Below are positions 1 through 32,779 of a DNA stretch of 32,779 bases, piece by piece. The notes beneath the pieces were generated by a model that saw nothing but the letters and a program-made list of their open reading frames with translations, was not told where the DNA came from and made no database searches. The stretch's first letter is position 1, and each line of letters begins with the position of its first letter. A program made the translations under genes and the position numbers. Origin of the DNA: Octopus bimaculoides (taxonomy: Eukaryota); contig NC_068983.1 of assembly GCF_001194135.2 (NCBI RefSeq), forward strand, positions 30,103,168 to 30,135,946, in the 5' to 3' direction.

Positions 1-35
1 TATATATATATGAAATTTTAAATTTAGCTCACAAA

Positions 36-76
36 CCCCCTCAGTAGATCTGTGGACCCCAGGTTGGGAACCACTG
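36..76. mobile_element. Terminal fragment of a hAT(Charlie)-like element
   Basis: Minus strand begins CAGTGGTTCCCAACCTGGGGTCC, resembling hAT-Charlie termini; only one end is visible. Confidence 0.45.
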
Positions 77-793
77 TTCCAGACTATGTAAGCCTAAAAC
101 ACATTGACAATCATACAAAGACTCAATAACAACCTCCACAAAGGATCACTGTTCAAAGTACAAAATGCAAGTGTCAGGACATTGCAACAGTATCACTACT
201 GCTAACCATGTGTGTGTAAATATTGATCTGGTATAGAGCCAAATCAAACTGGTATTGAATACTAAACACATGTACTCCTACCAAATGTGTTGAATGCCTC
301 TTTCTTTCATTTGTTAGCTCACTAATGTATATATGTGCATAGACACACATTTACATGTTCAAATTTTAACTTCCCAAAGCAAATACCCATGCAACAACAG
401 TATTGTCTCTAATGTGCCCTCCACATTAAGTAACCAATGGGGAAAAAAACATCACAGTTACTTAGACCAGTAGGAAGTGTTTTTCCATGCTTGCATACGT
501 TTTCTCCAACAGCATCCTACTACTTGCTGCATTTCTTTGAGATCCAATGCCCAGATTTCCCTTTCTCACAAATCTACTACCTTTTCACCCACCTGTCATT
601 GTTCCCACTAATCCACACTAGCTTATTTCTACCTTGACCAACATTCAGAAGATGAATCCCAGCGTTGTCAGTAAAGGCAATAGCTCTCTGGGTCGTTTCA
701 ATCCCAATTATTATGCGTTCAGACTCCACCCCACAAGCAACATGTTTGATTTACAGGGCCCTAAGGGAAATTAAGTTACAAATGTCTAAACAA

Positions 794-867
794 GCAAAGG
801 TCAGTATATTGTAACAATATCATTACTTTCAGCAACACCGACCAATATAGAATCATCATTCCTTTGC
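794..867 (-). ncRNA. SNORD18: Box C/D snoRNA U18 (SNORD18), copy A (guide variant)
   Basis: Stem and C, D', D boxes intact; guide reads AUUGGUCGGUGUU (C>G at window position 839). Confidence 0.85.
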
Positions 868-1521
868 AAGAGTAATCATATACAAAAGCAGAGGCTTCAA
901 TACTCCAATGACTTAGTTATCAGGCTTATCCGTACCAAAATGAAATTACACAAACCCATAACTGACAAATGAGTTTCCCTTGTCACACACAAGCTGAAAG
1001 AGCTAAACTTCATCACAGTAATAATTCTTGGCTTAGCTGTACTTCCCAGCTCATGCTTGCTTTATTTCTTTAGAGTCTAATGCATGCACATCTCACTCTC
1101 ATGCAAACGTGTAACTGACAAATGAGTTTCCCTCATCACATGCCAGTCCACCAGAGCTAAACTTCATTACAATAATGACTCTTGGCCATACTTGATCCAT
1201 ACACACATTGGGGGCCTCGTTAGATCTAATTACTTTAGTTCTGCTCCAACCCAATTTCTGCCCGATCACATTCAGCTCATCATGCTTGATTACTTTACCG
1301 TCCGATGTGCACACACCCCACTCATGCAAAGGTAACACTTTTACCTAGTTCTAATTCCAATTATGATCTCAGCCTCCCCTACCCCAAATCTGCTGTAATT
1401 TATGCACACAACAACAAATATAGAATCACTGTACCTTGTTGCAGCTAGCACTACAATTTGCTAAAACACAACACTGAATTTGAGGTACTTATAGGGCTCT
1501 AAGATACAAATCTTTATATAA

Positions 1522-1595
1522 GCAAAGGTCAGCATATTGTAACAATATCATTGCTTTCAGCAACACGGACCAATATAGAATCATCATTCCCTTGC
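1522..1595 (-). ncRNA. SNORD18: Box C/D snoRNA U18 (SNORD18), copy B
   Basis: Identical to copy C over the 74 nt by eye; all boxes and guide intact. Confidence 0.92.
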
Positions 1596-2092
1596 ATTAG
1601 TAATTATATACAAAAGCAGAGGCTTTAATACACCAACCACTTAGTTATCAGGCTTATCTATACCAAAATGAAATTACACAAACCCATAACCGACAGATAC
1701 TTTTCCCTTGTCACATGCTAGCGCAAAGAGCTAAACTTCATCACAGTAATATGACTCTTGGCTTAGCTGTACTTCCCAGCTCATTTCTGCCTGATTATGC
1801 TTGCTTTATTTCTTTAGAGTCTGATGTGTGCACACATCTCACTCTCATGCAAAGCTAACAGCTCCCTAGACCATTTATACCTAGTTCTAATTCCAATTAT
1901 GATCTCGGCCTCCCCTATCCCAAATCTGCTGCTGAACCCAAGTAACAATGTATTAGCTTCTACTACAAAAGCTCATGAGGGGGAAGGTAATTTATGCACA
2001 CAACAAATACAGAATCACTGTACTCTGTTGCAGCTAGCACAACACTGAATTTGAGGTACTTATCGGGCTCTAAGATACAAATCTTTATATAA

Positions 2093-2166
2093 GCAAAGGT
2101 CAGCATATTGTAACAATATCATTGCTTTCAGCAACACGGACCAATATAGAATCATCATTCCCTTGC
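2093..2166 (-). ncRNA. SNORD18: Box C/D snoRNA U18 (SNORD18), copy C
   Basis: All boxes and guide intact; terminal stem has one G-U pair. Confidence 0.92.
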
Positions 2167-2740
2167 ATTAGTAATTATATACAAAAGCAGAGGCTTTAAT
2201 ACATCAACCACTTAATTATCAGGCTTATCTATACCAAAATAAAATTACACAAACCTGTAACTGATAAATGAGTTTCCCTCATCACAAACCAGTCCAGAGC
2301 TAAACTTCATTAGAATAATGACTTTTGCTTGGCCATACTTGATCCATACACACATTGGGGGGCTCATTAGATCTAATTACCATACCCCAACTCAATTTCT
2401 GCCTGATCGTAATTGATTACTTTACCATCTGAAGTGCACACACATTAGCATTCAGTGCCCACACCCCACTCATGCAAAGGTAACACCTCTACCTAGTTCT
2501 AATTCCAATTATGATCTCGGCCTCCCCTACCCCAAATCTGTTGCTGATTAATATCCAAGTAACAAAGTATTAGCAACTACTATGAAACCTCATGAGACTG
2601 AAGGTAATTTATGCACACAACAATGAATATAGAATCACCGTACCTTGTTGCAGCTAGCACCACAATTTGCTAAAACACAACACTGAATTTGAGGTACTTA
2701 TAGGGCTCTAAGTGAAATTAAGATACAAATCTTTAAATAA

Positions 2741-2814
2741 GCAAAGGTCAGTATATTGTAACAATATCATTGCTTTCAGCAACACGGACCAATATAGAAT
2801 CATCATTCCTTTGC
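2741..2814 (-). ncRNA. SNORD18: Box C/D snoRNA U18 (SNORD18), copy D
   Basis: GCAAAGGAAUGAUGAUUCUAUAUUGGUCCGUGUUGCUGAAAGCAAUGAUAUUGUUACAAUAUACUGACCUUUGC: stem, C, 12-nt 28S guide, D', C', D all intact. Confidence 0.93.
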
Positions 2815-3377
2815 AAGAGTAATTATATACAAAAGCAGAGGCTTCAATATTCCAAACCACTGAGTTATCAGGCTTATCAGTACCAAAATGAAATTACACA
2901 AACCCGTAACTGTTAAATGATTTTCCCTCATCACATGCTAGCCCATCAAAGAGCAAAACTTCACTACAATAATAACTCCTAGCTTGACCAGACTTGTTTT
3001 TACAATCCAGCTTGCATAGTTCTTCTTTAACAGTATCTTACCATTTACCACATTCCTTTGTGAGACCCAATGCTCAGGTTTCCCCACTTCTCAAATCTAC
3101 TGCACTTTGATCTGCACACACACATTTGGGCCTCATTAAATCTAATAACTTCACCTCCACCCCAACTGATTTCTGGCCTTATTACATTCAGCAGATCATG
3201 CTTGCTCTATTTCTTTACAATTGAGGTTTATTATTTAAGCTTACATTGATTCCCTTGTGGTGTTGTTTTGCATTTATAAATAGAATAAATATATACAAAT
3301 TATAACACACTCAAAACCACCCGCACAGACAGCCTGACTAATGGAGCTCTAACGGAAATTAAGCTACAGATCTTTAA

Positions 3378-3451
3378 GCAAAGGTCAGAATATTGTAACA
3401 CTATCATTGCTTTCAACAACACGGACCAATATAGAATCATCATTCCTTTGC
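3378..3451 (-). ncRNA. SNORD18: Box C/D snoRNA U18 (SNORD18), copy E (D' box variant UUGA)
   Basis: Terminal stem GCAAAGG/CCUUUGC, C box AUGAUGA, guide AUUGGUCCGUGUU complementary to conserved 28S AACACGGACCAA, D' UUGA, D CUGA. Confidence 0.88.
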
Positions 3452-3641
3452 ATAAAAACATACTGAAGGACATTGAAACTGGCACAAACAACAGATCCTT
3501 TGAACCACAACAGCAGCCAAATTCCTTCAAACACTAAATAAAGCAGGGTCAAATATTAAAAATAGTCAGAATGAATCACACCAAGACTCAGAACCCGGTA
3601 CAAGCAAATCAGCAAAAAAAAAACAAAAAACAAAAACATAC

Positions 3642-3725
3642 AGGGGTGATCTCAACACAGACTGAACTTGATGGCTCTTCAAAATTCTTGTCAAATCCGA
3701 ATTGGACATCTTTGGCATTGGGAGA
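3642..3725 (-). CDS. RPL4: RPL4 exon 7
   Basis: tttttcag|T CTC CCA ATG CCA AAG ATG..TCA CCC CT|gtatgt; [28 protein letters not shown]. Confidence 0.93.
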
Positions 3726-4445
3726 CTGAAAAATTAAAACCAACATTCAGACAATGAAGTGTAGATCAATTCAAATGGAATCAATAATAATGATTAAGAA
3801 GAAATAATTTCAATTTATGAATTTGTAATCTTCAATAGCTACATTAAAGGAAGAAATATTCTTCCCATAATGACATTGTAGGATGTGAGGAGTTGGACCT
3901 GGTCGGTGTGAAAATGTATTTTGGCCGGACCCCACAATCTGCAGCACAAATTGAGAAAATAATTCTCAAGTCATACAACACTTACCACCCCCTTATATTA
4001 AGTTTTTGAAATGAATTAAATAGAATTCTTAGCCAAGCAAAATAACACTTTATTCATCACTCAGCCAAGAGAAAGTGTTGGCAGGCTACAGCTAGCAGCC
4101 TCATTTCATCCATCCAATTGACATCAGCAAACATATGATGTATAAAATTTCAGTATTGAAACATACATTGAGTCTTACTTCATTTTTTGTATGTAACAGG
4201 CCATAAAAAGAAAAAAAGAAAAACACAACTGTCTTGTATGTTTATGGCCAGTTAAGACAAAAAGCACCCCTAACCAACCCTGCCCATCAAAAAGTTTACC
4301 AACTTTAAGTCAAGAGGAAGGACACCATGACCAGTAAGGAATTTATCATTAGACTAGCGACCTAGTTGAAAAACCTGCGATGGAATGAACCCTATACCAC
4401 CCCTAAAATATGAATGCTGCCTAACCCTCACCTACAACTACAGTT

Positions 4446-4500
<55 letters not shown>

Positions 4501-7500
4501 AAGAGAGACAGAGACAGAAAGCCTGCCAACAGTACTTACTTGTAATCAACCTTTTCCTTGGATGGAGTTGTCCATGTTCCGTAGATGTTATCAAGCCTCC
4601 TAAAGGCAGACTCTGTCCATATACAGAAACGACCCACATGACCACCAGGGGCAATTTTCCTGAGGTTCAGATGCTTCACATTAAGCGTTGTGATACCTAC
4701 AAAGACAAATCATTATAATATAGAGGTCATGCAATTAGTGATACTAACCAGACGATATTGCTCAGTCAAGTATTACAAAAGAATGAACTCCCCACCACCA
4801 CCACAATATCAACTTTCTTATGCCAGTATGATTGCTTAATGACTTTACACTTACTGCGAAGCACAACCTAATGAGAATAGGCTTTACCATTGCTTTCTGT
4901 AACTCTCAGGCCATTTCCACATATATCAATTGGCATGTCTTTATCAAACACCCACAGGTTCATACAAGTTCAACTTATTCGCCCGCAGAGAAAGCTTCTT
5001 TCACACACTCTAGTGCCACTATCATGCAACATTACACCTCATTTGCAGAAAAAAACTCAAGATAATTAGTTTCCAAGTCAGTGTTAAAGACTTATTAGGG
5101 CCTAGGAAACTATAATGAAAAGACTCCATAACAACTGAACCTGGACAGACACCTACCCTTAAGGTAAATTCTTTGCTGATAATACATCCAGGACATATCA
5201 TTTAATGTCCACCTTCCATGCTAGCATGGGTCGGACGATTTGACTGAGGACTGGTGAACCAGAAGGCTGCACCAGGCTCCAATCTGATCTGGTTCTCACA
5301 ATTCTAGTGATCACCAAAAGGACACCACTGACATGGTTTTGTGAAGAGGAATACTAAATCAGGATATTGAATCAATATCACTACTGTTAAGAACACAAAC
5401 TGAATATAAAATTTCTTTGCAGTAGGAAGAGCCTCTCCAAATACTTAGTAAAGAAGATGCTACTGTATCTTTATTTCAACTCAACATTTCCTGCTCCACA
5501 TAACCATTCAGTTCAACATGCTACATTTACAGAGATAGAGACAAGGCACAGATTACAACTCTTGTAGAATGTCAACTTACCAGGAATGTTACGGAAAGCC
5601 CTCACAATTCCATTGTCCTTCTCATAGATAAGAACTGGTCCTTTACGCATAATCCTACGACGATTTCTCATCTTACCCTTTCCAGCCCTGAAGCGCTTGG
5701 ATTTATAGACCTGAAAGAAAAAGATGAATAAAATAAAAAAGACACTGAAATCAAACTATTTAGCAATACTTGAAATTACTAACAAACTACCGACACAAAG
5801 CAAAAACTAGGATATTATAGTGGTATCATTGCTGTGAAGAACACAGACCGAATATAAAATCATTAACAAACCTTTTCAATGTCACTCCAAGCCTTCAAAC
5901 GCCGCAACAAAGTTACAGCATCCTTAGTCTTCTTGTACTCCTGCACTTTATCAGTGATCACCAACGGAATTTCAGGAACCTCTTGAATTTGATGACCTAA
6001 AACATAAATATGCAAAAATAGCCATTTGAGATAATCCTGTGTCAACAGCACTAAATTCAAGCAAGAATAATGCCCTATCATACCCCATACTTATATAGCA
6101 GATAATCTAAACTAGATTAAGGAAGCAGTAAAAACATATAAGAAAGAAAAAAAAATTCGGCACTATCATGCTATTAGCTGTCAGAAGTGAAAGTGCTCAC
6201 TGCCTGCTAGTGAAGTATCTGTCTGTCTGCCTGCATGCCTGTTGCTGGCCTGTCAAAGAATCGACAGACCAGCAACAGGCATGCAGGCAGATACTTCACT
6301 AGCAGTGAGCACTTTCACTTCTGACAGCATGATAGTGCCAAAAATTCAGCCAGCTGACATGCGCCATGAGACTCAGCCAACACTAAGTACCAAAATTGAA
6401 AAGAAAGAACCCCACCCCACCACCAAAGAACATACTCTTCTATGACGGTTGAGAGAGAAATGGTCATAAAAATGTTCCTTTATGAAGAACTGTAGATGTT
6501 ATTGCAAAGAAACACTGACTATATTTCGCAACCACAAGACCATGAAATCTTCCTTGCACTAACTGACACACACCCCAAATAATATATTACTTAACAAATA
6601 CTCTATTCAAGAAATAGCAATATATCTCAATTATCTGTAGAAAAGGATACGTAACACTTACCCTTCGATTGAACCAAGGAAGTGATACCGCTAGCAGCAA
6701 CAGCAGAACACATAGCGTACCTCTTCTGATTGATGTTTATCTTTCTATGCCAGCGCCTCCAAACTTTGGTAGGAGCGAACATACGACCACCACGACACAT
6801 GTTACCGAATGCACCCTGACCTGATCTGTGAGTACCACCACCGCGTACACGAGGAATACGAGCGACAGCACGACCGGTACCCCAAGACTCAGCAGAAGTC
6901 TGATGACCTGAAAAACAAAACAGATTGAGATATGAAAATCAGTTATAACACAGAACAGATTGGAAGGTAAAACAAGCAATAATAATAATAATAACAACAA
7001 ACCTGCATATTTGGAAACAGCATAAGGATGACGAGAGTTCTTCATCATCTGGTCATGCACAAAGCTGACAATATCAGGCCGAATAGGGGCACTGAAAACA
7101 GCCGGCATTTTCACGTTGGAGGGCGTAGACTCACCCTTATCATTGTAGACCGACACAAGCGGGCGGATTGCCTGAAAAAATATATAATAGATAGCTTACA
7201 ACCAATTCAACAGTAATGATGTGTGTGTGTGTGCGTATATATATAGCTGTAAGGGACGTTTGTCAATTTTCAAAATTATTGGTGCACATTGGGATTAGAC
7301 ACTGAGGGTCGCCAAAAATAAAAAGGTTACAGCCGTTTCCCCTCGGTGTCTAATCCCAATGTGCACCTAATAATTTATTAATTACCTCTCTATTTTCTTA
7401 TATATATACATGCATATATATTAGAGAGACTTCCGAAGTTGTCTCAAGTGTATTAAAATGCAAAATATGTAATTGTTTATAAGCTTTCGCTGGATTTAAT

Positions 7501-8803
7501 AATTTAAACCCGGTGGAAGAGATGAACTTCATGTAGTTTCACTTAATTCAGCGCCCATTCCATTTATCACGTGCCAAGACCGAGATTCATACTCATGGAT
7601 TTATAAAAAGCACTACATAAATTTATAGTTGCAAATCATCATTTGTAGGCATTATATGAATGTGACCCATCGATCATCACATTTCAATCTAAACAGTGAA
7701 CGACGAAGCAGTAACTACAAGAAACGGCAGGCAAATCTTCCTCACCTCACACTCTACCGAGGGGAAAAGAAACCCCGACTCGATAGCATTCCATATATGC
7801 ATGCTGGTTCAAAGATGACAGAGGCACAATTATATAAACCAACGTAACCGTTTTAATTGAAGGCAACACTGATCGATCTTAGCACAACTTTCATATCACT
7901 TACGACTTATCAAAGACAAATCACCATAAACTAAAGCTACCACTACGATAAGCAGTCTAAAAATACTAAACTTAAACCCTCCATATCATAAAACGTTAAG
8001 TTATAATACTAAAGGATTTAAGGTTTTAATTAAAAGCTAAGCATTTTGAAATACGATATCGTACCCTAAAGGTTTATTAGTCTCACATCATCATATTCAA
8101 ACTAAACTATTATCAAATGTCTTCCAGCTATGACAATTCAAGCATTTTCTACATCTAGGCGATTCTATTAAATCTATCCTTGCTTTATTTCAACAAGGTA
8201 GAGAGAGAACGACTTGAAGGTAATCTGTTACTTGAAGTAAGACCAAAGACCGGCTTCAATAAAGTTTGGTTTAAAGTCGTCAAAAGCCTATTTTAAATAC
8301 TAATTAAATTGGATTCTACAACACTTTCAATTATTCTAATTCTTTTTAAAAAGCAAGCGCTTCAACACACATTAACATTCATAAAATAATTCCAATTAAA
8401 TGACACGTGTTACAGAAATTGCATTATTTAGAAGGGGACTAAGTAATTTACTTATGGAATTACTTTCTAAAAAATGATATTGGTAATTGAAATAACATTT
8501 AAATTATAACCTACGTTTCGATCTCAAAGGAATATGAAGAAAATATCAACGTAGACAAAGGCTGAAAAGAAATGTTCCTGCTTCACGTGGGTCTTTCTTG
8601 AGAGTATCGCCATATTGCTGCAGCAAGCGAGGGCAAGAGTGCGACAAATTAACATCAAAAACGGTAAATATTAACGTGATTAGTCGCAAAATTAATAACA
8701 ATTAACGATAGATGTCAACTTTAATGAAATAAAGTAAGTGTGAAATTATTTGGTTGCTTTAAAATTCGATAATATCGACTGAAACACTTACCGCCTTCGA
8801 CAT
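3642..8803 (-). CDS. RPL4: 60S ribosomal protein L4 (uL4), spliced, 3'-partial (exons 1-7; remaining exons left of window)
   Basis: Exons 8792-8803, 7003-7171, 6662-6907, 5872-5996, 5581-5710, 4540-4696, 3642-3725. All introns are GT..AG with consistent phases (0,1,1,0,1,2; exon 7 ends in phase 2). They join to [127 protein letters not shown]. No KKNP-containing next exon was found in 1-3641. Confidence 0.97.
4447..4520. repeat. (GA)n microsatellite in RPL4 intron 6
   Basis: Direct inspection. Confidence 0.95.
4540..4696 (-). CDS. RPL4: RPL4 exon 6
   Basis: [42 protein letters not shown]..; donor gtaagt. Confidence 0.96.
5353..5420 (-). pseudogene. Decayed U18 relic in RPL4 intron 5
   Basis: + strand tcaggatattgaatcaatatcactactgttaagaacacaaactgaatataaaatttctttgc aligns to U18; D box retained, C box and guide degraded. 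Confidence 0.7.
5581..5710 (-). CDS. RPL4: RPL4 exon 5
   Basis: [43 protein letters not shown]; donor gtaagt. Confidence 0.96.
5800..5864 (-). pseudogene. Decayed U18 relic in RPL4 intron 4
   Basis: + strand gcaaaaactaggatattatagtggtatcattgctgtgaagaacacagaccgaatataaaatcatt aligns colinearly to U18; C, D' and D boxes are mutated. Confidence 0.75.
5872..5996 (-). CDS. RPL4: RPL4 exon 4
   Basis: [42 protein letters not shown]. Confidence 0.96.
6159..6339. repeat. Long inverted repeat / hairpin (about 75-bp stem) in RPL4 intron 3
   Basis: Arms 6159-6254 and 6263-6339, loop aaagaatc; the left arm carries three small extra insertions. Confidence 0.9.
6662..6907 (-). CDS. RPL4: RPL4 exon 3
   Basis: [52 protein letters not shown]; donor gtaagt. 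Confidence 0.97.
7003..7171 (-). CDS. RPL4: RPL4 exon 2
   Basis: ttttcag|GCA ATC CGC CCG..TAT GCA G|gt; [17 protein letters not shown]. Confidence 0.95.
7273..7376. repeat. Near-perfect 36-bp hairpin in RPL4 intron 1
   Basis: Arms 7273-7308 and 7340-7376, 31-nt loop, one mismatch and one bulge. Confidence 0.9.
8792..8803 (-). CDS. RPL4: RPL4 exon 1 coding part (MSKA)
   Basis: ATG TCG AAG GCG|gtaagt, just downstream of a pyrimidine TOP tract; phase 0 matches exon 2. Confidence 0.85.
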
Positions 8804-9231
8804 AGCTGGTGACTTGGAGTAGTCCTAATTAGAAAAGAGGAAGACGGGAAGTCATTATAACACACATAGCTCAGCTTAGGTTTTGTATTCATCCGCGCGT
8901 GTCGTAAAAATAAAATTACCGGCTTTATTGAAGGATTTTTAATCGTATAACAAAATATTATATTTTAAAGTTCAAATATTTTATTATTAATTTGAAAAAC
9001 TAAAGTAAATAACGTAAAATTGATTATTTTTGCTACGGTTTATTTTGTTAGCGTAAGTATTTGTGTGTTTAATAGTGACATCATACGGCGAAAATTGAAA
9101 CTACAAACGGGAGATAACTCTTATCGTAAATTTATTTGACCCCCGCCAAATTGTTTTCAAATGACGGGAGTCTCGATGTTGTCAATTGACTTCGATTTGT
9201 ATATTTGAAATATTGTACCATAATCGGAGAA
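8804..9231. promoter_or_regulatory. Bidirectional promoter region shared by RPL4 and TUBGCP4
   Basis: Divergent ATGs at 8803 (-) and 9232 (+). CpG-richer than its surroundings and repeat-free. E2F-like TTTGGCGG on the minus strand at 9143-9150. Confidence 0.7.
8831..8843 (-). promoter_or_regulatory. 5' TOP / TCT-type initiator of RPL4
   Basis: Minus strand CTTCCTCTTTTCT about 30-40 nt upstream of the ATG, as typical for ribosomal protein gene start sites. Confidence 0.75.
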
Positions 9232-9306
9232 ATGTTACATGAACTTTTATTCGCCTTATCCGGTTACCCTGGAAACATATTTGTCGATAATGGTGATAAA
9301 ATACAG
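9232..9306 (+). CDS. TUBGCP4: TUBGCP4 exon 1
   Basis: MLHELLFALSGYPGNIFVDNGDKIQ|gtacac. Confidence 0.93.
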
Positions 9307-11920
9307 GTACACTATATCACAATTTCCTTTGTTATTGAACTTATATCAAGACAAACTGACGTAGTCTTTGTGGACGATCGGCGTGCTGAAAATACCAGCC
9401 AAATGTCTTTAAAATCTCACCCTATCTTCTTAAATAAGGAAATGATTGGATGGTCATGGCTAGTTTGTCTTTGATCATGGGTTATACAGCTATAATTGTC
9501 TAAGAATTTACGCGTGTCTCTTAACAGTTCATTGTAATAGAGGGAAAAGTAAAAGATTGTGCACTTGCCATAAATAAATGAAGTGAAATGAGAAATGCTG
9601 GCAACGAAATGTTTACTTTTGTGACAAGTGTTTTATGTTTGCATAATTTTAAGATTTTTGTCAATGAGTTTTTGTTGTTTAGCTAGAGATCTACTTTGAT
9701 TGTACAGCATTTAAAATAACAGAAATCGACTTATGTCGTGAAGAAGGTGCAACATTCTAAGGCTGATACACTGTATAACATACATTTGACAATTCCATAT
9801 CAGAATGTACCAAATAGTGATCAACTAGACACATATGGCATATCTGAAACTATAGACCTGTGGCTCTTGCTTGGCCGATTTCGAACGTGACAAAGATCGG
9901 TTCGATCACTGCTGACCGGAGTTACGTAGCAACGGCATTCACCTCTTTAGGTCAGAATGTGCAGTATCGTTGTCAAATGAACAAAAGTACATATCCCATA
10001 GCTTTGGATCGTGTTCGTCATTCGGCTGCTTATTAACGGACGGAATTCTGGTTTAAGCATCCCATATAACTTCTCATAACTTTTTTCACTTTTTGGAATT
10101 TTTTTCAGGGACGGGATTTAAAAAAAAATTTTTTTTTTGCCTAACTATGGATTTCTGTGTGTAGGATACAAATTCGCAAAACTTTTTGAAAATTGTCCCA
10201 AAATAAGGTTATGAGAGGTTATATAGGGTACTTAAACTTGAATACCGCCTATTAACATACCATAGGTTTCCTTGATCAGGACTGACTAGGGGGGGGGGCA
10301 TCATAACTTTTTTCAACTTGAGGGTGGACAGTCGATATACAACAGGTTACATGCGTTCTTGTATTTTCTTTTGCAACCATTAAATGTGAAACCAATAAAG
10401 TTACACACTGTTTCGTAACAATAAGAAATGTTGGTATCAAAAAAGGTTAACTCTTTTGATACCGACCTGCTTGAGACTGTCCCCTGGGACTGTGAGACAA
10501 ACCTTGAAATTGATTTAATTTTAAACCTCCTATCAAAGTTTCATATTAGTTTATGTTTCAAAATAATGGCAAAGTTATTTGACTAAATTCTTCTTTATTT
10601 TTGAAGTTAATTAAAGCGAAGGTAGTTTATTTCAACAGCAATATGGTAATGAAAGGGTTGGATGTTTTTTTAATGAAATTCTTATGCTATTAATGGGAAC
10701 CTCTGCCTTGTAACTGGGTTTGGTACGATAATGCTTTGCCTGACAGTCCCTGTAACAGAGCAACAATGGTAAGCTGTTAACCAATCAACCAGACAAAGGT
10801 GGCATCCCAGCATGGTCACGGCTTAGTGGTTACCACCAGGTAAAACAATCATATAACTTCTATAATCATCATTTAACGTCCGTTGTCCATGCTGGCATAG
10901 GCTGGACAGTTTGATCAGGGCTGGCAAGCTGAATGGTGGCGGGCTGCACCAGAGTCAAGGCTGGTTTGGCATGGTTTCTACAGCTTGATGCCCTTTCTAA
11001 CGCTAAACACTTTACAGAGTGTGTTGGGTGCTTTTATGTGGCACCGCCACGTTTACCTTTGTTGAAATGCATGTTTTTTGTCTCAAACTTTTGTAGATAA
11101 TTCTAACCTCAGCCAAATGATACATGATAAAAGTGTGTGGGGAGACTCGTTAGTACTACCTCAGACAACATCACTGGAACCCATGCCATTATAAAATATC
11201 TAGTCCATGCTGTAGATCTGTTGGCTAGGTAGGGTATCCAGTTGTGAAAATCTTGTAACATACCCAACAGTAAAGATTTCTTATTGTGCATGCGATAGTG
11301 AATGCCCATGGCAAGTGACAAGTCACTGTACTGGAACAGACTACCCAACCATGCCAACGCAAAAAGAAAACAGATACAAGCATGGCTGTGTGGTTAGAAG
11401 CTTGCTTTCCAAACACGGAACAGGTTCAATTCCACTGCATGGCACCTTGGGTAAGTGTCTTTTAACTATAGCCCTTGGGCCGACCAAAGCCTTTGAATGG
11501 ATTTGGTAGACAGAAACTGAAAGAAGCCTGTTGTGTGTATATTTAGGTATGTACACACAAACATACACACACATATATATATATCTGATGATATCTATAA
11601 AGTTTAAAATAATGTTCATTACATATTTTTCCTTTATTGGAGCAAATATGGCTTACAGCTGTTTCTAGTAGTCATTATAGGTACATGACAGACAGGTTTA
11701 CTCACTTGGTCTATTGATCAATTGAGAAAAATTGAACGACTTAAGAAAATTAATGCTACTTTCATCAGAGCCATTTCTGGTTATAACAAGCAGAGAATTG
11801 AAGGGATGGCTAAGATCACCTGGAGTTCTTCACTAATCTAAGTATTATTGTTGGTATGGTGTACAAACAGAGAGCTTATGAAGTATTTTGCCCATATTGA
11901 TAACCCCTCACTATTAACTC

Positions 11921-11965
<45 letters not shown>

Positions 11966-12302
11966 AAATAAGCAGAAATCAAACTTTTGTTTATTCTGTT
12001 ATTACCTGTACCCTATGAGCATAATGTGCTTGCATACCCATGCCCAGTGATAACATAGGCAAATGATACTGGTAGTAAGAACGGATATTCTTATTCCTTA
12101 GATGGTTATTCCAACTGCTAACTCTACTTGCATGGCTGTGTGGCTAGGAAGCTTGCTTCCCAGCTACATGGTTTCGGGTTCAGTCTTCTGCTATAGCCCC
12201 GGGCCGACCGAAACTTTGTGATTGAATTTGGTTGGCGGAAGTTACTGCCGCGTGTGTATATGTCTGTGTATGTACCTGTGCCTCTCCGAAAGAGAGAGAG
12301 GG

Positions 12303-12337
<35 letters not shown>

Positions 12338-15300
12338 TATATATGTGTGTGTGTAGATCTGTGTGTCTTTATGTCTGTGTTTGTCTCCCTTCCCCACTGC
12401 TTGACAATTGGTGTTGGTGTGTTTACATCCCTGTAAATCATCAGGTAAAGTTACTGATAGAATAAGTACAAGGCTTCAAAAAATAAAGCACTAAGGTTGA
12501 TTCATTCAAGTAAAAATTCTTCAAGGTGGTGCCCTAGCATGGCTACAATCAAATGACTGAAATAAATGAAAGATAAAATGAGGTAAAATTATTTATATAT
12601 TATAGGTTCAAAAAGGACTTCCCTTTTTACATTCTGCTGAGGAAAAAGCTCTGAATCGTCTCTGTCAGTTGGCCACCCATTTTAAGATGTTTAAAGGATT
12701 CATAAACAAATACTGTAAGTTTGCATTTAGATGTTCCTATCTCTTTAGAATTTTAATTATTTTGTTGTTATATCCGTGGAGGCGCAATGGCCCAGTGGTT
12801 AGGGCAGCAGACTCGCGGTCATAGGATCGCGGTTTTGATTCCCAGACCGGGCGTTGTGAGTGTTTATTGAGCGAAAACACCTAAAAGCTCCACAAGGCTC
12901 TGGCAGGGGATGGTGGCGAACCCTGCTGTACTCTTCCACCACAACTTTCTCTCACTCTTACTTCCTGTTTCTGTTGTGCCTGTAATTCAAAGGGTCAGCC
13001 TTGTTACACTGTGTCACGCTGAATATCCCCGAGAACTACGTTAAGGGTACACGTATCTGTGGAGTGCTCAGCCACTTGCACGTTAACTTCCCGAGCAGGC
13101 TGTTCCATTGATCGGATCAACTGGAACCCTCATCGTCGTAAGCGACAAAGTGCCAACAAAAAAAAAATGTTTACAAGGGGGAGACAAGCACCTCCACCCA
13201 GCTAAGCCTGCATCCAGAGACATGTTTCTGAGTCTTTGCTCGTCATCAGTCTGGAGTAGCATGACTTGCTAGTCAAAGATGCCTATCAAGCTCTTGTAAA
13301 CATATAATAATTCTAGTGAAATACATTCACTGATTTCAAATTTATTATTTCTAAATGTGTAAATGTATATGTCATCTTTTATTTTTCAGCTTTCTGCAAT
13401 TTTCATCCAGATAGTGCTGGTTCAACAACTGGTGAAATGCATGGTATCTACCTGATGTTTTTATGTAGTGGATTAAATACTTTGCTAGAGGACTACCAGA
13501 ATGACATTTTGGAACTTGAGAAATCTGCCTTAGCTGATCCACACCTTCCTGTCAGTGAAGTCCTTCTCAAACTTCAACATGTAAGATGTTTTTTAGACAT
13601 TTAATTATTGAGTTAGTTGAGTGGTTATTGTGTATGGGGATACTTCCTTGCATATCTTCTGTTCAAACCCTAAACAAACAAAGACAATGATTTCATGTTG
13701 CTGTTTAACCCCTGCCATGTAAAAATCGCCTGTGCAGGTGTCATGTAAATCATCATCATCATCATCGTTTAACGTCCGCTTCCCATGCTAGCATGGGTTG
13801 GACGATTTGACTGGAGACTGGCGAACCAGATGGCTACACCAGGCTCCAATCTGATTTGGCAGAATTTCTACAGCTGGATGCCCTTCCTAACGCCAACCAC
13901 TCAGAGAGTGTAGTGGGTGCTTTTACGTGTCACCCGCACGAAGGCCAGTCAAGCGGTACTGGCAACGGCCACGCTCAAAATGGTGTATTTTATGTGCCAC
14001 CCGCACAAGAGCCAGTCCAGGGGCACTGGCAACGATCTCTCTCAAAAATCCTTACACATGTCACGGGCACAAGTGCCAGAAAGGTGACGCTGGGCACAGG
14101 TGCTATCCCGATTTTGCTTTCGCTTGCCCCAATAAGCAGCTGAAAAGCATCCATGCTGGTGTCACATGTGAAGTACCTGTGCTAGTGCAATATAAAGAGC
14201 ACCCACTACACTGTAAAGTGGTTGGTGTTAGGAAGGGCATCTGGCCATAGAAACCATGTTAAAACAGACAATTGGAGCCCGGTGCAGCTGTTCTGCTAGC
14301 CAGCTCCTGTCAAACCATCCAACCCATGCCAGCAAGGAAAATGGATGTTAAATGATGATAATGAATCTAGGATGAATGTGTCTTTCCTTTTTCCACTCAG
14401 GCACAGGCATCATCATCATCATCATCATCGTCGTTTAACGTCCGCTTTCCATGCTAGCATGGGTTGGACGATTTGACTGAGGACTGGTGAAACCGGATGG
14501 CAACACCAGGCTCCAATCTAATTTGGCAGAGTTTCTACAGCTGGATGCCCTTCCTAACGCCAACCACTCAGAGAGTGTAGTGGGTGCTTTTACGTGTCAC
14601 CCGCACGAAAACGGCCACGCTCGAAATGGTGTCTTTTATGTGCCNNNNNNNNNNNNNNNNNNNNNNNNNNNNNNNNNNNNNNNNNNNNNNNNNNNNNNNN
14701 NNNNNNNNNNNNNNNNNNNNNNNNNNNNNNNNNNNNNNNNNNNNNNNNNNNNNNNNNNNNNNNNNNNNNNNNNNNNNNNNNNNNNNNNNNNNNNNNNNNN
14801 NNNNNNNNNNNNNNNNNNNNNNNNNNNNNNNNNNNNNNNNNNNNNNNNNNNNNNNNNNNNNNNNNNNNNNNNNNNNNNNNNNNNNNNNNNNNNNNNNNNN
14901 NNNNNNNNNNNNNNNNNNNNNNNNNNNNNNNNNNNNNNNNNNNNTTCACGCAGCTATCCTCCTCCATTCTCACCACATGTCCATACCAGCGCAATCGTCT
15001 CTCTTGCACGCCACAACTGATGCTTCTAATGTTCAGCTTTTCTCTCAAGATACTTACACTCTGACGGGTATTCACATTGACATTACACATCCAACGGAGC
15101 ATACTGGCTTCATTCCTTGCGAGCTTACGTATGTCCTCAGCAGTTACAGCCCATGTTTCACTGCCATGTAGCATGGCTGTTCGTACGCATGCGTCATACA
15201 GTCTGCCTTTTACTCTGAGTGAGAGTCCCTTTGTCGCCAGCAGGGCTAAGAGCTCTCTAAACTTTGCCCAGGCTATTGGCTGTGTGATTAAGAAGTTTGC

Positions 15301-16089
15301 TTCTAAACCTCTTGGTTTCAGGTTCAGTCCTACTGTGTGCTACTTTAGTTTCAAGTGTCTTCTACTATAACCCTGGATTAGCCAAAACTCAGAATGTAAA
15401 GGCAGACGAAATACTGCTAAGCATTTCGCCCAGCATTCTAACGTTTCTTATTTCTTTATTGCCCACAAGGGGCTAAATACAGAGGGGACAAACAAGGACA
15501 GTCAAAGGGATTAAGTCGATTACATTGGCCCCAGTGCGTAACTGGTACTTAATTTATCAACCCTGAAAGGATGAAAGGCAAAGTTGACCTCGGCGGAATT
15601 TGAACTCAGAATGTAACGGCAGACAAAATACCACTAAGCATTTCGCCTGGCATGCTAGCGCTTCTGCCAGCTCACCGCCTTTCACACACCACATATTAGT
15701 TGGCCCATAACTACAGCAGAAGATACTTTCTAAAAGTACTTCACTGACTGAACTATATGATAACAAAATGAAGTCTGTATCCTCACAGGCATGCGTGTGC
15801 TTCCATATTTTATTAATATATTTGAATGATAATAAAATGTCTAAATAATATTGATGTTTTTATATATTTGATTTTTTTCAGTATGAACTGCTGTTTCCTG
15901 CATTGTCCTCTTTCTTGACAGAACTTAAACAACATGAGGTACAACTTTCATTATATAACATCATCATCTTCACAATTATCATTGTTTTAACATTGCAGAC
16001 TATTGGAAATAAACAACATTGCTTGTGTGACAGTGGCACCCATTTACAAATATCACATGATATCAAGACAAGGAAACCCAAACCTTCAT

Positions 16090-16132
<43 letters not shown>

Positions 16133-16179
16133 TACACATAGACACAAATACACACACACATACACACATACAGACACAC

Positions 16180-16216
<37 letters not shown>

Positions 16217-19200
16217 GCTTCTTTCAGTTTCTATCTACCAAACCCACTCATAAGGCTTCAATCAGCCAGGATCTATAGTAGAAGACATTTGCTCAAAGTA
16301 CCACACAGAGGAACTGAGCCTAAAACCATTTGGTTAGAAAGCAAGCTACTTAACCACACAGCCTGCACCTCTGTATAATACCTGTGTCTCTGTGAATCAT
16401 CTCAATGTGCCACTTGGTTGCCTCCTTTATGCCACATGTGTGTATACTGTGATTGGGAATGGGTAAAATTGCAATTGTTGGTGTAATTTGTTGAGGCAGA
16501 TTTTCTATGACTGCATGCCTTTTCTAACAACAACCCTCACTTGTTTCAAAGCAAGGTAATATTTCCCCATTACCAGACATGCTTTCATTTAAGTTTAGAA
16601 GTGCGTGACACTATTTGTATGATGAGGATATTCATTTATAATGATTTTGTGATGTCAAGACAAGGAGACTTCCTCCTTTGTTCTGTCCGCATATGCATTT
16701 GTCTATTTTGATCTCCATTTTATTACCAATTGAGCAAGACAGTGGTGATGTTTACATTCTTTGTTGGCATTACATTCTTTGTAGACACAGGAGTGGCTGT
16801 GTGGTAAGTAGCTCGCTTACCAACCACATGGTTCTGGGTTCAGTCCCACTGCGTTGCACCTTGGGCAAGTGTCTCCTACTATAGCCTCGGGCCAACCAAA
16901 GCCTTGTGAGCGGATTTGGTAGACGGAAACTGAAAGAAGCCCGTCGTATATATATATATATATATACCGGAGTAAGCACATGAAATGTGCAACAAGGTGG
17001 AAAAAAGAGTACTCAAATACCAGAGGTAGAGTAATATGCTTTATTTAAAAGCAGCATAAATATAACAAAAAAACCGTTACTCTGAGTTTCACGTTCCCGT
17101 TCATCGGACAGTTTTGTTAGNNNNNNNNNNNNNNNNNNNNNNNNNNNNNNNNNNNNNNNNNNNNNNNNNNNNNNNNNNNNNNNNNNNNNNNNNNNNNNNN
17201 NNNNNNNNNNNNNNNNNNNNNNNNNNNNNNNNNNNNNNNNNNNNNNNNNNNNNNNNNNNNNNNNNNNNNNNNNNNNNNNNNNNNNNNNNNNNNNNNNNNN
17301 NNNNNNNNNNNNNNNNNNNNNNNNNNNNNNNNNNNNNNNNNNNNNNNNNNNNNNNNNNNNNNNNNNNNNNNNNNNNNNNNNNNNNNNNNNNNNNNNNNNN
17401 NNNNNNNNNNNNNNNNNNNNNNNNNNNNNNNNNNNNNNNNNNNNNNNNNNNNNNNNNNNNNNNNNNNNNNNNNNNNNNNNNNNNNNNNNNNNNNNNNNNN
17501 NNNNNNNNNNNNNNNNNNNNNNNNNNNNNNNNNNNNNNNNNNNNNNNNNNNNNNNNNNNNNNNNNNNNNNNNNNNNNNNNNNNNNNNNNNNNNNNNNNNN
17601 NNNNNNNNNNNNNNNNNNNNNNNNNNNNNNNNNNNNNNNNNNNNNNNNNNNNNNNNNNNNNNNNNNNNNNNNNNNNNNNNNNNNNNNNNNNNNNNNNNNN
17701 NNNNNNNNNNNNNNNNNNNNNNNNNNNNNNNNNNNNNNNNNNNNNNNNNNNNNNNNNNNNNNNNNNNNNNNNNNNNNNNNNNNNNNNNNNNNNNNNNNNN
17801 NNNNNNNNNNNNNNNNNNNNNNNNNNNNNNNNNNNNNNNNNNNNCATCGAAATACACAGTTGCATACGCACAAACAATCTACGTATATAGGCCTATATTT
17901 ACAAGGCACAGATATATACATAAGTACAAATCTACACACATATACACACACACGCATTTAAGTTTGCGCGTGAAAAACCTATGTGCTGGTAACGAAAATT
18001 GTATCTTAAGCTATGGAGTGGAGGAGTAAAGAGTAACGTATCTATAATAACGTTAAATATAGGANNNNNNNNNNATCATAACAGCATATGCACAAGTGCA
18101 AACCCAGGCCCTATATGTAAGCGCAGGTACATGCATATGAATACTTAAGTGCTGTAACTATACAGACATCTACATAAAGAAACCATTAGATCTCGGTGTA
18201 TATATGCAGCCAACTTCTTAAATAAACCGCTGGGTGTATAAAAGTTAAAACCAGGCGAAAGTACATGCATAAAAGAATACAAAGCGTTTTTTTTTTTAAA
18301 TAAATAGAATAGAATGAAGTAAAAAGTAAAAACAAGGGAGAAGAAAAATTATGTATATAACAGACGAAGGTTTTCTTAAAATGATGCAGGGGTCTTTACA
18401 AAATTCTTACAACGCTAAATAAATCATTTATAATTTGGTACCAATCCAATAGCCAGATTGCACAATGGTTATAAGGATTCGATCATAGTCAAAAATTACC
18501 CATATGGAATATTACATGCAGACATTTTAAATTTGGATGCATGCCTACATGTGTTTAAAAGTTCGCGTCTTTGGTTTAGCGCCTTCTTATCCTGGAACAA
18601 GATATTCATTTTTTCCAATAAACAAAGATCACATTTCAATGGTCTCTTATGGGCACCGTGTCTGTAAGGCGATGCTTTGCCTAAAATCCTCCATGTCACG
18701 TTGAAAGGCTGGGCTTCATTCTCCTTTAAATGCCAGATGTATTTTGCCAGGCTCGTCTTTGTCCTATTTTCAGGGTACCTAAAAAAATTTTTATGCGAAT
18801 ACAGTCTGGTTTTGAAAGAATTTTCTGTAGCCCCTGTATATGTTCTATAATCATGCGAGCCNNNNNNNNNNNNNNNNNNNNNNNNNNNNNNNNNNNNNNN
18901 NNNNNNNNNNNNNNNNNNNNNNNNNNNNNNNNNNNNNNNNNNNNNNNNNNNNNNNNNNNNNNNNNNNNNNNNNNNNNNNNNNNNNNNNNNNNNNNNNNNN
19001 NNNNNNNNNNNNNNNNNNNNNNNNNNNNNNNNNNNNNNNNNNNNNNNNNNNNNNNNNNNNNNNNNNNNNNNNNNNNNNNNNNNNNNNNNNNNNNNNNNNN
19101 NNNNNNNNNNNNNNNNNNNNNNNNNNNNNNNNNNNNNNNNNNNNNNNNNNNNNNNNNNNNNNNNNNNNNNNNNNNNNNNNNNNNNNNNNNNNNNNNNNNN

Positions 19201-32395: not shown

Positions 32396-32579
32396 ATCAT
32401 CATCATCATCATCGTTTAACGTCCACTTTCCATGCTAGCATGGGTTGGACGATTTGACTGAGGACTGGTGAAACCGGATGGCAACACCAGGCTCCAATCT
32501 AATTTGGCAGAGTTTCTACAGCTGGATGCCCTTCCTAATGCCAACCACTCAGAGAGTGTAGTGGGTGCTTTTACGTGTC
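32396..32579 (-). mobile_element. (GAT)n-tailed repeat, truncated
   Basis: Near-identical to 14408-14600; ends in (TA)n. Confidence 0.85.
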
Positions 32580-32610
<31 letters not shown>

Positions 32611-32779
32611 GGTTTTTAAACTTTTAAATTTTCATATTCAAATGTCTAAATCCAATGGACCAGTCACTGGATAAGTTTGGCACAGAAATGTTAACATAGA
32701 GTGGTGAATAAATCGATATATCGAATTTGAAGTCTCTGTCTCTTTTGAATATGAAAATTTAAAAGTTTAAAAGCCTTAT

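Follow-up and report, generated by a model that had tools for sequence, protein, structure and literature searches.

Five tandem U18 (SNORD18) copies within a single RPL4 intron of Octopus bimaculoides

A stretch of 32,779 nucleotides of the Octopus bimaculoides genome (contig NC_068983.1, positions 30,103,168 to 30,135,946; here called the window) was scanned with Rfam cmscan. The scan of the whole window returned exactly five matches at or above the gathering score, all of them to SNORD18 (RF00093) and all on the minus strand (Table 1). Every match spans the full model (positions 1-71 of 71) at 41.1-47.3 bits, the gathering cut-off of this family being 41 bits. Five tandem U18 copies had been placed at 794-3451 by the original prediction, made from the letters of the DNA, and the coordinates of the matches agree with it. 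Each copy forms a 74-nt unit including a 7-bp terminal stem (GCAAAGG/CCUUUGC), and the SNORD18 hallmarks of a C box ((A)UGAUGA), a D box (CUGA) and the stem are present in all five, as is the C' box (UGAUAU). The D' box reads CUGA in four of the five copies and UUGA in copy 1. The guide is AUAUUGGUCCGUGUU, and its rRNA-pairing part UUGGUCCGUGUU lies directly upstream of D' in copies 1-4; copy 5 carries one mismatch, a C-to-G change inside the guide (GGUCGGUGUU) that predicts a G-G mismatch in the guide-rRNA duplex. This copy is probably impaired, or else the change is a sequencing error; copy 5 of Octopus vulgaris is intact. The spacers are long, about 500-650 nt, and their sequences differ from copy to copy. 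An assembly artefact was ruled out, as the spacers differ and other octopods show the array again in two independent assemblies; the array stretch is also free of N gaps.

Table 1. Positions of the U18 copies, their decayed relatives and the surrounding RPL4 features in the window
Feature	Position	Strand	Rfam SNORD18 match	Score	Remarks
RPL4 exons	7171-7001, 6914-6660, 5997-5869, 5713-5549, 4697-4542, 3725-3642	-			tblastn
RPL4 exon 7, 84 nt	3642..3725	-			tblastn with O. vulgaris and Argonauta RPL4; encodes 28 residues
RPL4 intron 7, 5' part	1..3641	-			no RPL4 coding match; leaves the window at its start
U18 copy 1	3378..3451	-	3381-3448	44.1 bits	guide intact, D' UUGA, unique flanks
U18 copy 2	2741..2814	-	2744-2811	47.3 bits, E 4e-6	fully canonical
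Decayed U18, 5' half	2608..2646	-		32 (alignment)	no intact C box (ACGGUGA); copy 2 lies about 97 nt upstream
U18 copy 3	2093..2166	-	2096-2163	46.5 bits	stem G-U pair (GCAAGGG); identical to copy 4
Decayed U18	1991..2017	-		26 (alignment; null maximum 30)	downstream of copy 3; homologous to the other remnants; family D8
U18 copy 4	1522..1595	-	1525-1592	46.5 bits	identical to copy 3
Decayed U18	1399..1437	-		32 (alignment)	downstream of copy 4
U18 copy 5	794..867	-	797-864	41.1 bits	barely at the cut-off; boxes and stem intact, guide GGUCGGUGUU
Decayed 3' half of a sixth U18	167..200	-		36 (alignment)	C'-like box, CUGA and 3' stem arm; downstream of copy 5

The exons recovered by tblastn bear out the strand, the host gene RPL4 and the location past exon 7 that had been proposed, with all copies sense to the host. 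The junctions of exon 7 were read directly (a slash marking the junction) as ttttcag/TCTCCC at the acceptor and CACCCCT/GTATGT at the donor, and the orthologous exon 7 (L001, 16150-16233) has exact junctions. Intron 7 begins after the codon for residue 323 (O. vulgaris numbering), and copy 1 starts 190 nt past its 5' splice site. According to orthology and colinearity with O. vulgaris, the intron continues for about 750 nt beyond the start of the window before the next exon is reached. The predicted lack of coding exons between the copies was upheld by tblastn with octopod RPL4 residues 324 onward, which gave no match in 1-3641. It had also been proposed that the copies share one intron, and this holds for O. 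vulgaris (16234-23210) and Argonauta hians (13504-15825), where exact junctions enclose all copies. The RPL4 protein is continuous over this junction in octopods, squid-like transcripts and human, so that no residues are left for a hidden coding exon. The array thus has the layout of an intronic snoRNA cluster, two or more snoRNA genes in one intron with no coding exon between them, although non-coding cassette exons might still separate some copies. In octopods, U18 is absent from the other RPL4 introns, all copies being housed in this one in host-sense orientation.

Such non-coding mini-exons, or recursive splice sites, could put each U18 into a lariat of its own, and at the level of RNA each intron would then again hold a single snoRNA. 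Pyrimidine-rich AG motifs were indeed seen by eye about 60-70 nt past the copies, reading GTGTTTTAG in Octopus and TTTCTCGTCAG in Argonauta. In addition, some copies are followed at 97 nt by a donor-like AAG/GTACGG. However, on a splice-site matrix built on 40 real RPL4 junctions these acceptors score 1.8-3.9 bits. Such values do not exceed the 7th percentile of the real sites and are usual for random intronic windows. The donor-like motif belongs to a decayed U18, being its stem and C-box region. Among acceptors 30-130 nt past the copies, the best reach 0.5-7.4 bits, which is no improvement on random intronic windows (median 2.6 bits, 90th percentile 6.4), and the matrix scan found no recurrent internal pair of donor and acceptor. 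In Argonauta, no acceptor within the repeat units reaches even the lower quartile of the real sites, and the inclusion of an exon would in any case disrupt the reading frame. Hidden splicing is thus considered very unlikely. One specific candidate, a 26-nt mini-exon past copy 2 (GTGTTTTAG at 71 nt, followed by AAG/GTACGG), was rejected, with its acceptor at background level and its donor inside a decayed U18.

The comparison with other octopus RPL4 loci that the original prediction had proposed revealed five copies in the same intron of O. vulgaris (6977 nt) and four in that of Argonauta hians (2322 nt). Colinearity between the two Octopus species extends over window sense positions 15-1272 (O. 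vulgaris 29-1242) and 3027-3725 (O. vulgaris 5802-6327), and spacers are rearranged even between these two. Copy 1 is orthologous to O. vulgaris copy 1, UUGA and AUAGUG being common to both. Copy 2 matches copies 2 and 5 of O. vulgaris at 74 of 74 positions, in an intron with 86% identity overall. As had been predicted, bodies are better conserved than spacers: they are 91-100% identical in all Octopus pairs, and the flanks of copy 1 cannot be aligned with those of the others. Because the bodies of copy 1 and copies 2-5 are 93-96% identical despite these unalignable flanks, at least two copy lineages appear to be old and constrained. Between Octopus and Argonauta, the snoRNA bodies alone align within the intron. 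They differ at 16 of 74 positions, none of which falls in the C, C' or D boxes or in UUGGUCCGUGUU; two differences lie just 3' of the latter (N1 and the first D' base), and one stem change still allows a G-U pair. The similarity among paralogues appears to be explained in part by recent duplication or gene conversion (within-species homogenisation), with the flanks of O. vulgaris copies 2-5 being 97-100% identical and the Argonauta repeat units matching at 419-422 of 424 positions.

The intron was also searched for remnants by local alignment to the U18 body, for which the null maximum score was 30, and the four that were retained (Table 1) provide a picture of neutral decay within the same intron. 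Since these decayed remnants adjoin intact copies, the intact ones are under purifying selection that keeps the 74-nt bodies functional. Given the guide mutation of copy 5 and the degenerate D' box of copy 1, not all five copies may need to be functional.

Lophotrochozoans carry one U18 per RPL4 intron in some cases and two to five in others. One copy per intron, spread over different introns, was found in chiton (whose orthologous intron holds a single U18), oyster, Lingula and Owenia, and introns with several copies also occur in Gigantopelta, Haliotis and Mercenaria. Spacer lengths in the multi-copy molluscs vary widely, the shortest being about 100 nt and the longest exceeding 1 kb. From this comparison the ancestral state appears to be a lone U18 in that intron, from which the array would have been built by repeated local duplication, and the multi-copy state seems to have arisen independently in three other mollusc lineages. 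In every species examined, all copies are sense to the host. The guide core is invariant in at least 40 copies from ten taxa. Covariation of the terminal stem was analyzed in 22 distinct lophotrochozoan U18 sequences. These were selected for pairing in this register, which two oyster copies and those of chiton lack. Of all cells, 89.6% are paired; shuffling lowers this share to 56.5% and sliding the register to 36-51%. Compensatory changes occur at all seven stem pairs. The Rfam scan at the gathering score detected nothing in the squid-like transcript or in the Gigantopelta and chiton loci. A motif search recovered U18 copies where that scan gave none, so the negative result reflects a sensitivity problem; as the SNORD18 model misses non-cephalopod mollusc copies, snoRNA annotation is incomplete in these genomes. 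The squid-like RPL4 sequence (Logan contig L003) is a spliced transcript and provides no decapodiform intron. The recurrence in other mollusc classes had gone unnoticed in the original prediction, as had the guide mutation of copy 5 and the decayed U18 in the spacers. A literature search found no published account of cephalopod or mollusc snoRNA organisation, and one for 'SNORD18 A1313' found nothing.

This distribution also bears on whether the extra copies matter. One or two copies might be processed efficiently and the remainder be young by-products of unequal crossing-over that are still undecayed and bring no dosage benefit. The remnants, the guide mutation of copy 5, the near-identical Argonauta units and the homogenised O. 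vulgaris flanks speak for fast turnover of this kind, and the copy number differs between the genera (5 versus 4). Nevertheless, the divergence of copy 1 from copies 2-5 is confined largely to the flanks, and the multi-copy state has been kept in both Octopus species and Argonauta besides its apparent origins in the other molluscs, which makes mere redundancy unlikely.

The reading that we favor, with somewhat better than even confidence, is a tandem array of five U18 in RPL4 intron 7 that is co-transcribed, separated endonucleolytically and guides rRNA methylation. The guide upstream of D' would direct 2'-O-methylation of the A in the LSU rRNA motif GAAAC[A]CGGACCAA. We take the target to be ...AACACGGACCAA of LSU rRNA, a conserved motif that is general knowledge and was not obtained from the octopus genome, in which this A is opposite the fifth nucleotide from D'. 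The copies would be transcribed as part of the RPL4 pre-mRNA, with the core C/D proteins assembling on each of them. An endonuclease would then cut the spacers of the spliced or unspliced intron, and 5'-3' and 3'-5' exonucleases would trim the fragments to the protected snoRNP ends, so that each host transcript could yield as many as four or five U18.

The sequence holds no pointer to a specific nuclease. A sliding-window fold of three octopod introns detected no spacer hairpins shared by the Octopus and Argonauta units, and the hairpins of the Argonauta unit have z scores of about 0 to -1. A polycistronic unit of the RNase III type, as in yeast and plants, was rejected in the absence of a stable spacer hairpin common to both genera.

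Each unit could alternatively be an independent gene with its own promoter that is merely housed in the intron, and a TATA-like TGTATATAATTAC is found about 10-20 nt upstream of the stem in window copies 2-5. Copies 2-5 of O. vulgaris lack this motif and read AGCAATTAATCTT, neither copy 1 of the two species nor Argonauta has it, and the uniform host-sense orientation likewise argues against separate transcription. Independent promoters are accordingly regarded as extremely unlikely, and the TATA-like motif was dismissed as unconserved. A second candidate snoRNA in the spacers, a GUGAUGAGGGAAA...CUGA-like element of family D3 that precedes copies 2-5 by about 130 nt, was dismissed as well: Rfam gave no match to it even at E = 5, its D-box-like CUGA and significant folding are each found in one copy only, and two of the window copies have lost its C-box-like motif.

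Exonucleases might also act alone. The intron would then be spliced, debranched and trimmed to the outermost snoRNPs, leaving long RNAs that end in U18, either sno-lncRNAs of about 0.6-0.7 kb or chains of greater length, instead of, or besides, five free U18. In mammals, sno-lncRNAs arise by exactly this route from two snoRNAs in one intron (PMC11028025; see also PMC4234469), and no endonuclease signal was seen in the octopus spacers. The locus has the genomic precondition, at least two snoRNAs in one intron. Against a function of the internal sequence, the spacers are unconserved between Octopus and Argonauta and rearranged within Octopus, and the recurrence of the layout in molluscs with such different spacer lengths is better explained by snoRNA dosage than by a specific lncRNA. 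We give this outcome a small chance.

Endonucleolytic separation, as favored here, finds its counterparts in known systems. The octopus layout appears to work in the manner of fly and plant intronic snoRNA clusters, in which several snoRNAs likewise share a host intron and need to be separated after transcription; the octopus array belongs to the phylum Mollusca and consists of copies of one snoRNA. Plant cluster spacers are typically shorter than those of the octopus. The vertebrate SNORD18A/B/C genes in RPL4 (Xenopus L1) have the same family, guide, predicted target, host and sense orientation, and several paralogues per gene, but are found one copy per intron in different introns, whereas octopods pack all into one. 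For the frog, references 1, 4 and 5 in PMC5282483 describe XendoU as the endoribonuclease that serves intron-encoded snoRNAs, the cases studied being U16 and U18. According to references in PMC5282483 and to PMC11028025, release from Xenopus L1, which concerns the same host gene and U18 along with U16, is endonucleolytic and independent of splicing, which is what a multi-copy intron needs. The octopus layout fits this frog route by analogy; the route is known only from frog oocytes and extracts. Mammalian sno-lncRNAs (Prader-Willi region, SLERT) also come from introns with at least two snoRNAs, and their intervening sequence can escape exonucleases (PMC11028025); unlike them, the octopus array resides in a highly expressed ribosomal protein gene and its spacers show no sign of conservation between Octopus and Argonauta.

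The original prediction of an undescribed system of snoRNA dosage amplification and processing was not supported, since several snoRNAs per intron form a recognised class, the intronic snoRNA clusters (PMC11028025, PMC12205218). They are common in flies (PMC6619189), and the mammalian form of this layout gives rise to sno-lncRNAs (PMC11028025). The octopus array is a further case of this already described organisation. More tentatively, molluscs including octopods might possess an efficient, splicing-independent endonuclease release of box C/D snoRNAs from RPL4 pre-mRNA that relaxes the rule of one snoRNA per intron and has permitted at least four separate amplifications (octopods, Gigantopelta, Haliotis and Mercenaria), or the arrays might give rise to long RNAs with U18 ends that have a separate function. 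If true, the endonuclease route would uncouple U18 output from host mRNA output. Release of all copies would show how the dosage of a snoRNA can go up while host transcription stays the same, and would suggest that an endonucleolytic pathway exists beyond flies, plants and frog oocytes. In this array nature provides a clean test case for the processing of two or more snoRNAs from a single intron in animals, in which the octopus copies are individually traceable by SNPs: these tell apart copy 1 (UUGA/AUAGUG), copy 2, copies 3/4 (GCAAGGG...AUAUGCUGA) and copy 5 (GGUCGG/AAAGUAAUG).

Scanned against Rfam, the entire 32.8-kb window yielded exactly five matches that reach or exceed the gathering score, all of them full-length SNORD18 (RF00093) hits on the minus strand with scores of 41.1-47.3 bits. 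The five-copy U18 array that the original prediction had read from the sequence was thereby confirmed, and the units, as delimited by their stem boundaries, match the predicted span. A permissive scan (positions 1-3760, E up to 5) recovered no additional loci, and other C/D families matched the same five copies more weakly. The octopus copies are bona fide SNORD18 members in the expected host gene. All five are built in the order 7-bp terminal stem, C box (AUGAUGA), guide (AUAUUGGUCCGUGUUG), D' box, C' box (UGAUAU) and D box (CUGA). The stem is GCAAAGG/CCUUUGC; in copies 3 and 4 its 5' arm reads GCAAGGG and includes a G-U pair. The D' box of copy 1 reads UUGA in place of CUGA, and the guide region of copy 5 (GGUCGGUGUU) carries a mid-guide C-to-G change; neither had been part of the earlier account. 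Assembly gaps (1383 N in total) are located at ~14640-15000 and ~25640, away from the array.

U18 copies, U18 remnants and RPL4 exons in the window, and U18 copies in RPL4 of other lophotrochozoans
Feature	Position	Strand	Remark
U18 copy 1	3451-3378	-	74 nt incl. terminal stem
U18 copy 2	2814-2741	-	74 nt incl. terminal stem
U18 copy 3	2166-2093	-	74 nt incl. terminal stem
U18 copy 4	1595-1522	-	74 nt incl. terminal stem
U18 copy 5	867-794	-	74 nt incl. terminal stem
Decayed U18 5' half	2646-2608	-	spacer; C box destroyed
Decayed U18 5' half	2017-1991	-	spacer; C box destroyed
Decayed U18 5' half	1437-1399	-	spacer; C box destroyed
Decayed U18 3' half	200-167	-	spacer
RPL4 exons	7171-7001, 6914-6660, 5997-5869, 5713-5549, 4697-4542, 3730-3641	-	tblastn
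Lingula			3 copies, one per intron
Chiton Liolophura			4 copies, one per intron; one of them in the orthologue of the octopus array intron
Oyster Saccostrea			3 copies, one per intron
Annelid Owenia			3 copies, one per intron
Gastropod Gigantopelta aegis	L004 (RPL4 locus) 15186-20130		5 copies in a single 13.2-kb intron; last without D box
Gastropod Haliotis asinina	L008 (RPL4 locus) 3557-5169		3 copies in a single intron; one with mutated C box
Bivalve Mercenaria mercenaria	L006 (RPL4 locus) 8670-8914, 12249-15173		2 copies in one intron, 4 in another

The host gene RPL4 is encoded on the minus strand, with O. vulgaris RPL4 as the top protein match (97% identity) and Argonauta hians as the next (90%). 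Junctions read from the sequence place exon 7 at 3725-3642 with the donor CACCCCT/GTATGT and, since residues 324 onward gave no tblastn match in positions 1-3641, intron 7 extends past the window edge. Exact junctions in the orthologous loci were set such that translating the spliced exons reproduced the annotated protein. The orthologous intron of O. vulgaris (locus L001, 16234-23210) spans 6977 nt and holds five U18 copies, the first slightly below the Rfam cut-off; that of Argonauta (locus L002, 13504-15825) spans 2322 nt and holds four, repeating every 424 nt exactly. At either end the window intron aligns colinearly with that of O. vulgaris, which places the absent exon 8 ~750 nt past coordinate 1. 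The protein is unbroken over the exon 7-8 junction (octopus ...LRSP/LVRLNRYKLKKNPL), with equal spacing in Argonauta, squid-like transcripts and human RPL4, so that no room is left for a hidden coding exon between copies. All five window copies lie inside a single RPL4 intron. About 2.6 kb of extra sequence between O. vulgaris copies 2 and 3 (L001 ~17100-19600) has no counterpart in the window species; this sequence, probably an inserted transposable element, explains much of the intron-length difference. The O. vulgaris protein model (P0001, L001 10001-10294) has a 15-residue N-terminal extension relative to the Argonauta start MSKAAIRPL, which looks like an annotation artefact, and a (GA)n microsatellite lies inside RPL4 intron 6 (4448-4518).

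Donor and acceptor matrices derived from 40 verified RPL4 junctions of six lophotrochozoans were scanned over three octopod introns. Sites scoring higher than the lower quartile of the real junctions were scattered in these introns and did not recur at a fixed unit position, and the Argonauta repeat units held no acceptor above this level. In the interval 30-130 nt downstream of the copies, the top acceptor per copy scored 0.5-7.4 bits, comparable to random 100-nt intronic windows (median 2.6 bits, 90th percentile 6.4), and an apparent cryptic 3' splice site with a 26-nt mini-exon, picked out by eye, was therefore rejected as background. The donor-like AAG/GTACGG was rejected as well, since it corresponds to the stem and C box of a decayed U18. 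Weak non-coding cassette exons between the copies are conceivable but have no support.

When the ten Octopus copies are compared in all 45 combinations, the snoRNA bodies are 91-100% identical, a paralogue similarity that stems partly from recent duplication rather than constraint, whereas their 150-nt flanks range from about 30-50%, the level for unrelated sequence under forced global alignment, up to 60-100% in related units. Copy 1 has flanks unrelated to those of copies 2-5 and a body 93-96% identical to theirs; it is orthologous in both Octopus species, with a common UUGA D' box and AUAGUG and 78-80% identical flanks. Window copy 2 matches O. vulgaris copy 2 at 74/74 positions, in a stretch of intron with an overall identity of 86%. 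When the window was compared with Argonauta across the gene, the ~80-nt snoRNA bodies were the only alignable pieces of intron 7. Octopus and Argonauta bodies agree at 58/74 positions. No change affects the C, C' or D box or the portion of the guide that pairs with rRNA (UUGGUCCGUGUU); the differences lie in the C box-guide interval, adjacent to D', in the stretch preceding the D box and at two bases directly 3' of the paired portion, namely N1 and the D' box's first base. One stem difference keeps its pairing as G-U. Within-species homogenisation was seen in O. vulgaris, where the upstream flanks of copies 2-5 are 97-100% identical, and in the Argonauta units (419-422 of 424 positions). The contrast of bodies and flanks, the decayed pieces in the spacers and the homogenised flanks together show that the array evolves through ongoing duplication, conversion and decay, with purifying selection evident on the intact bodies.

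A repeated element (2899-2951, 2250-2302, 1679-1731, 1104-1156 and 951-1003, minus-strand sense) is found ~130 nt upstream of copies 2-5 and also in O. vulgaris. Its consensus, GUGAUGAGGGAAA(A/C)UCAUUU..GUUAYGGGUUUGUGUAAUUUCAUUUUGGUA, contains a C-box-like motif and a small hairpin but lacks a conserved D box and matches nothing in Rfam; the element is possibly a decayed snoRNA, or merely a piece of the duplicated unit. Some 40 nt immediately 3' of every Octopus copy (3340-3377, 2700-2740, 755-793 and equivalents) are likewise conserved as UUAAAGAUYUGUARCUUAAUUUCNCUUAGAGC, including copy 1, whose other flanks are unique, and only a faint resemblance is seen in Argonauta. This stretch may serve in processing or assembly, or it may just mark the edge of the duplicated unit.

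U18-like copies were present in all lophotrochozoan RPL4 loci fetched when the guide core and flanking boxes were used as the search pattern. In the two non-cephalopod loci scanned with Rfam, those of Gigantopelta and Liolophura (L004 and L005), SNORD18 gave no match at the gathering score; the copies missed by the model carry canonical boxes and the invariant guide, so that snoRNA annotation in these genomes is likely incomplete. Copies in the remaining taxa were identified by motif search only, and exon maps, exact or nearly so, served to assign all copies to introns. The amplified intron is not the same from lineage to lineage, and the amplifications are therefore independent. The terminal stem varies by taxon and covaries (GCAAAGG/CCUUUGC, GUUGAAG/CUUCAAC, UGACAAG/CUUGUCA, CAGUAAA/UUUACUG and others). 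Among 22 distinct sequences, picked as those pairing in the tested register, 89.6% of 154 cells were paired versus 56.5% in shuffles and 36-51% in slid registers, with double changes at 7/7 stem pairs.

U18 is predicted to guide 2'-O-methylation of LSU rRNA at the bracketed A of GAAAC[A]CGGACCAA, a universally conserved motif. This prediction combines the guide sequence of the octopus copies, the fifth-nucleotide rule that holds for box C/D guides, the LSU motif and what is known of vertebrate and yeast U18/snR18. As for release of the snoRNAs, exonucleases alone free at most the outer ends of a multi-snoRNP intron, so that full release requires cuts in the spacers. Folding of the octopod introns revealed no stable hairpins common to Octopus and Argonauta, which counts against a yeast/plant RNase III-type signal, and neither a conserved per-unit promoter nor, in the matrix scan of three octopod introns, recurrent cryptic splice sites were found. 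The family membership, single-intron location, conservation and turnover of the copies are established; for their release we infer, as the most economical model, that U18 would be co-transcribed with RPL4, a snoRNP would assemble on every copy, the A/U-rich spacers would be cut endonucleolytically with loose specificity and exonucleolytic trimming would complete the release. The main rival is that trimming halts at the snoRNPs and leaves U18-ended long RNAs like mammalian sno-lncRNAs (PMC11028025); the unconserved spacers argue against a function of such RNAs, which may nevertheless form.

Intronic snoRNA clusters are a recognised class (PMC11028025, PMC12205218), common in flies (PMC6619189), whereas mammals mostly carry one snoRNA per intron. 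Fly and plant clusters are thought to work by the same scheme of co-transcription, cleavage and trimming as proposed here for octopus. Frog U16 and U18, whose host gene is likewise RPL4, are the classic examples of snoRNAs set free by an endonuclease, XendoU (references 1, 4 and 5 in PMC5282483; also PMC11028025). The layout of the octopod array falls within the class of intronic snoRNA clusters. The original prediction was right about SNORD18 in one RPL4 intron, and its proposal of an undescribed amplification and processing system was not borne out, the arrays being instances of the known class. A literature search found no published work on snoRNA organisation in cephalopods or other molluscs, and the octopod array and the recurrent single-intron U18 amplification in mollusc RPL4 therefore appear undescribed. 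The octopod array would hold no great surprise for a snoRNA specialist; it provides a tidy comparative case and a good substrate on which to test how animals handle clustered intronic snoRNAs.

Head-to-head with RPL4 sits a gene for a gamma-tubulin complex protein (GCP) (9190-9471 and 13320-13601, plus strand), a neighbourhood common to Octopus, Argonauta, Haliotis and Saccostrea (flanks of RPL4 loci L001, L002, L008 and L009), and in both octopods RPL4 is followed by a TPK gene. RPL4 intron 1 contains a 33-nt island (8384-8416, minus strand) with a CACGTG E-box that is 88% identical between Octopus and Argonauta and is, besides the snoRNAs and the promoter region, the sole conserved non-exonic piece of RPL4 in this comparison. 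An interspersed repeat family occurs on both strands (13811-14140, 14481-14640, 21350-21694, 24721-25035, 27072-27386 and 32419-32671); many copies yield the same pseudo-ORF (…GLVKPDGYTRLQSDLAEFLQLDALPNANHSESVVGAFTCHPHEGQS…), and the family probably represents a SINE or another transposable element of octopus.
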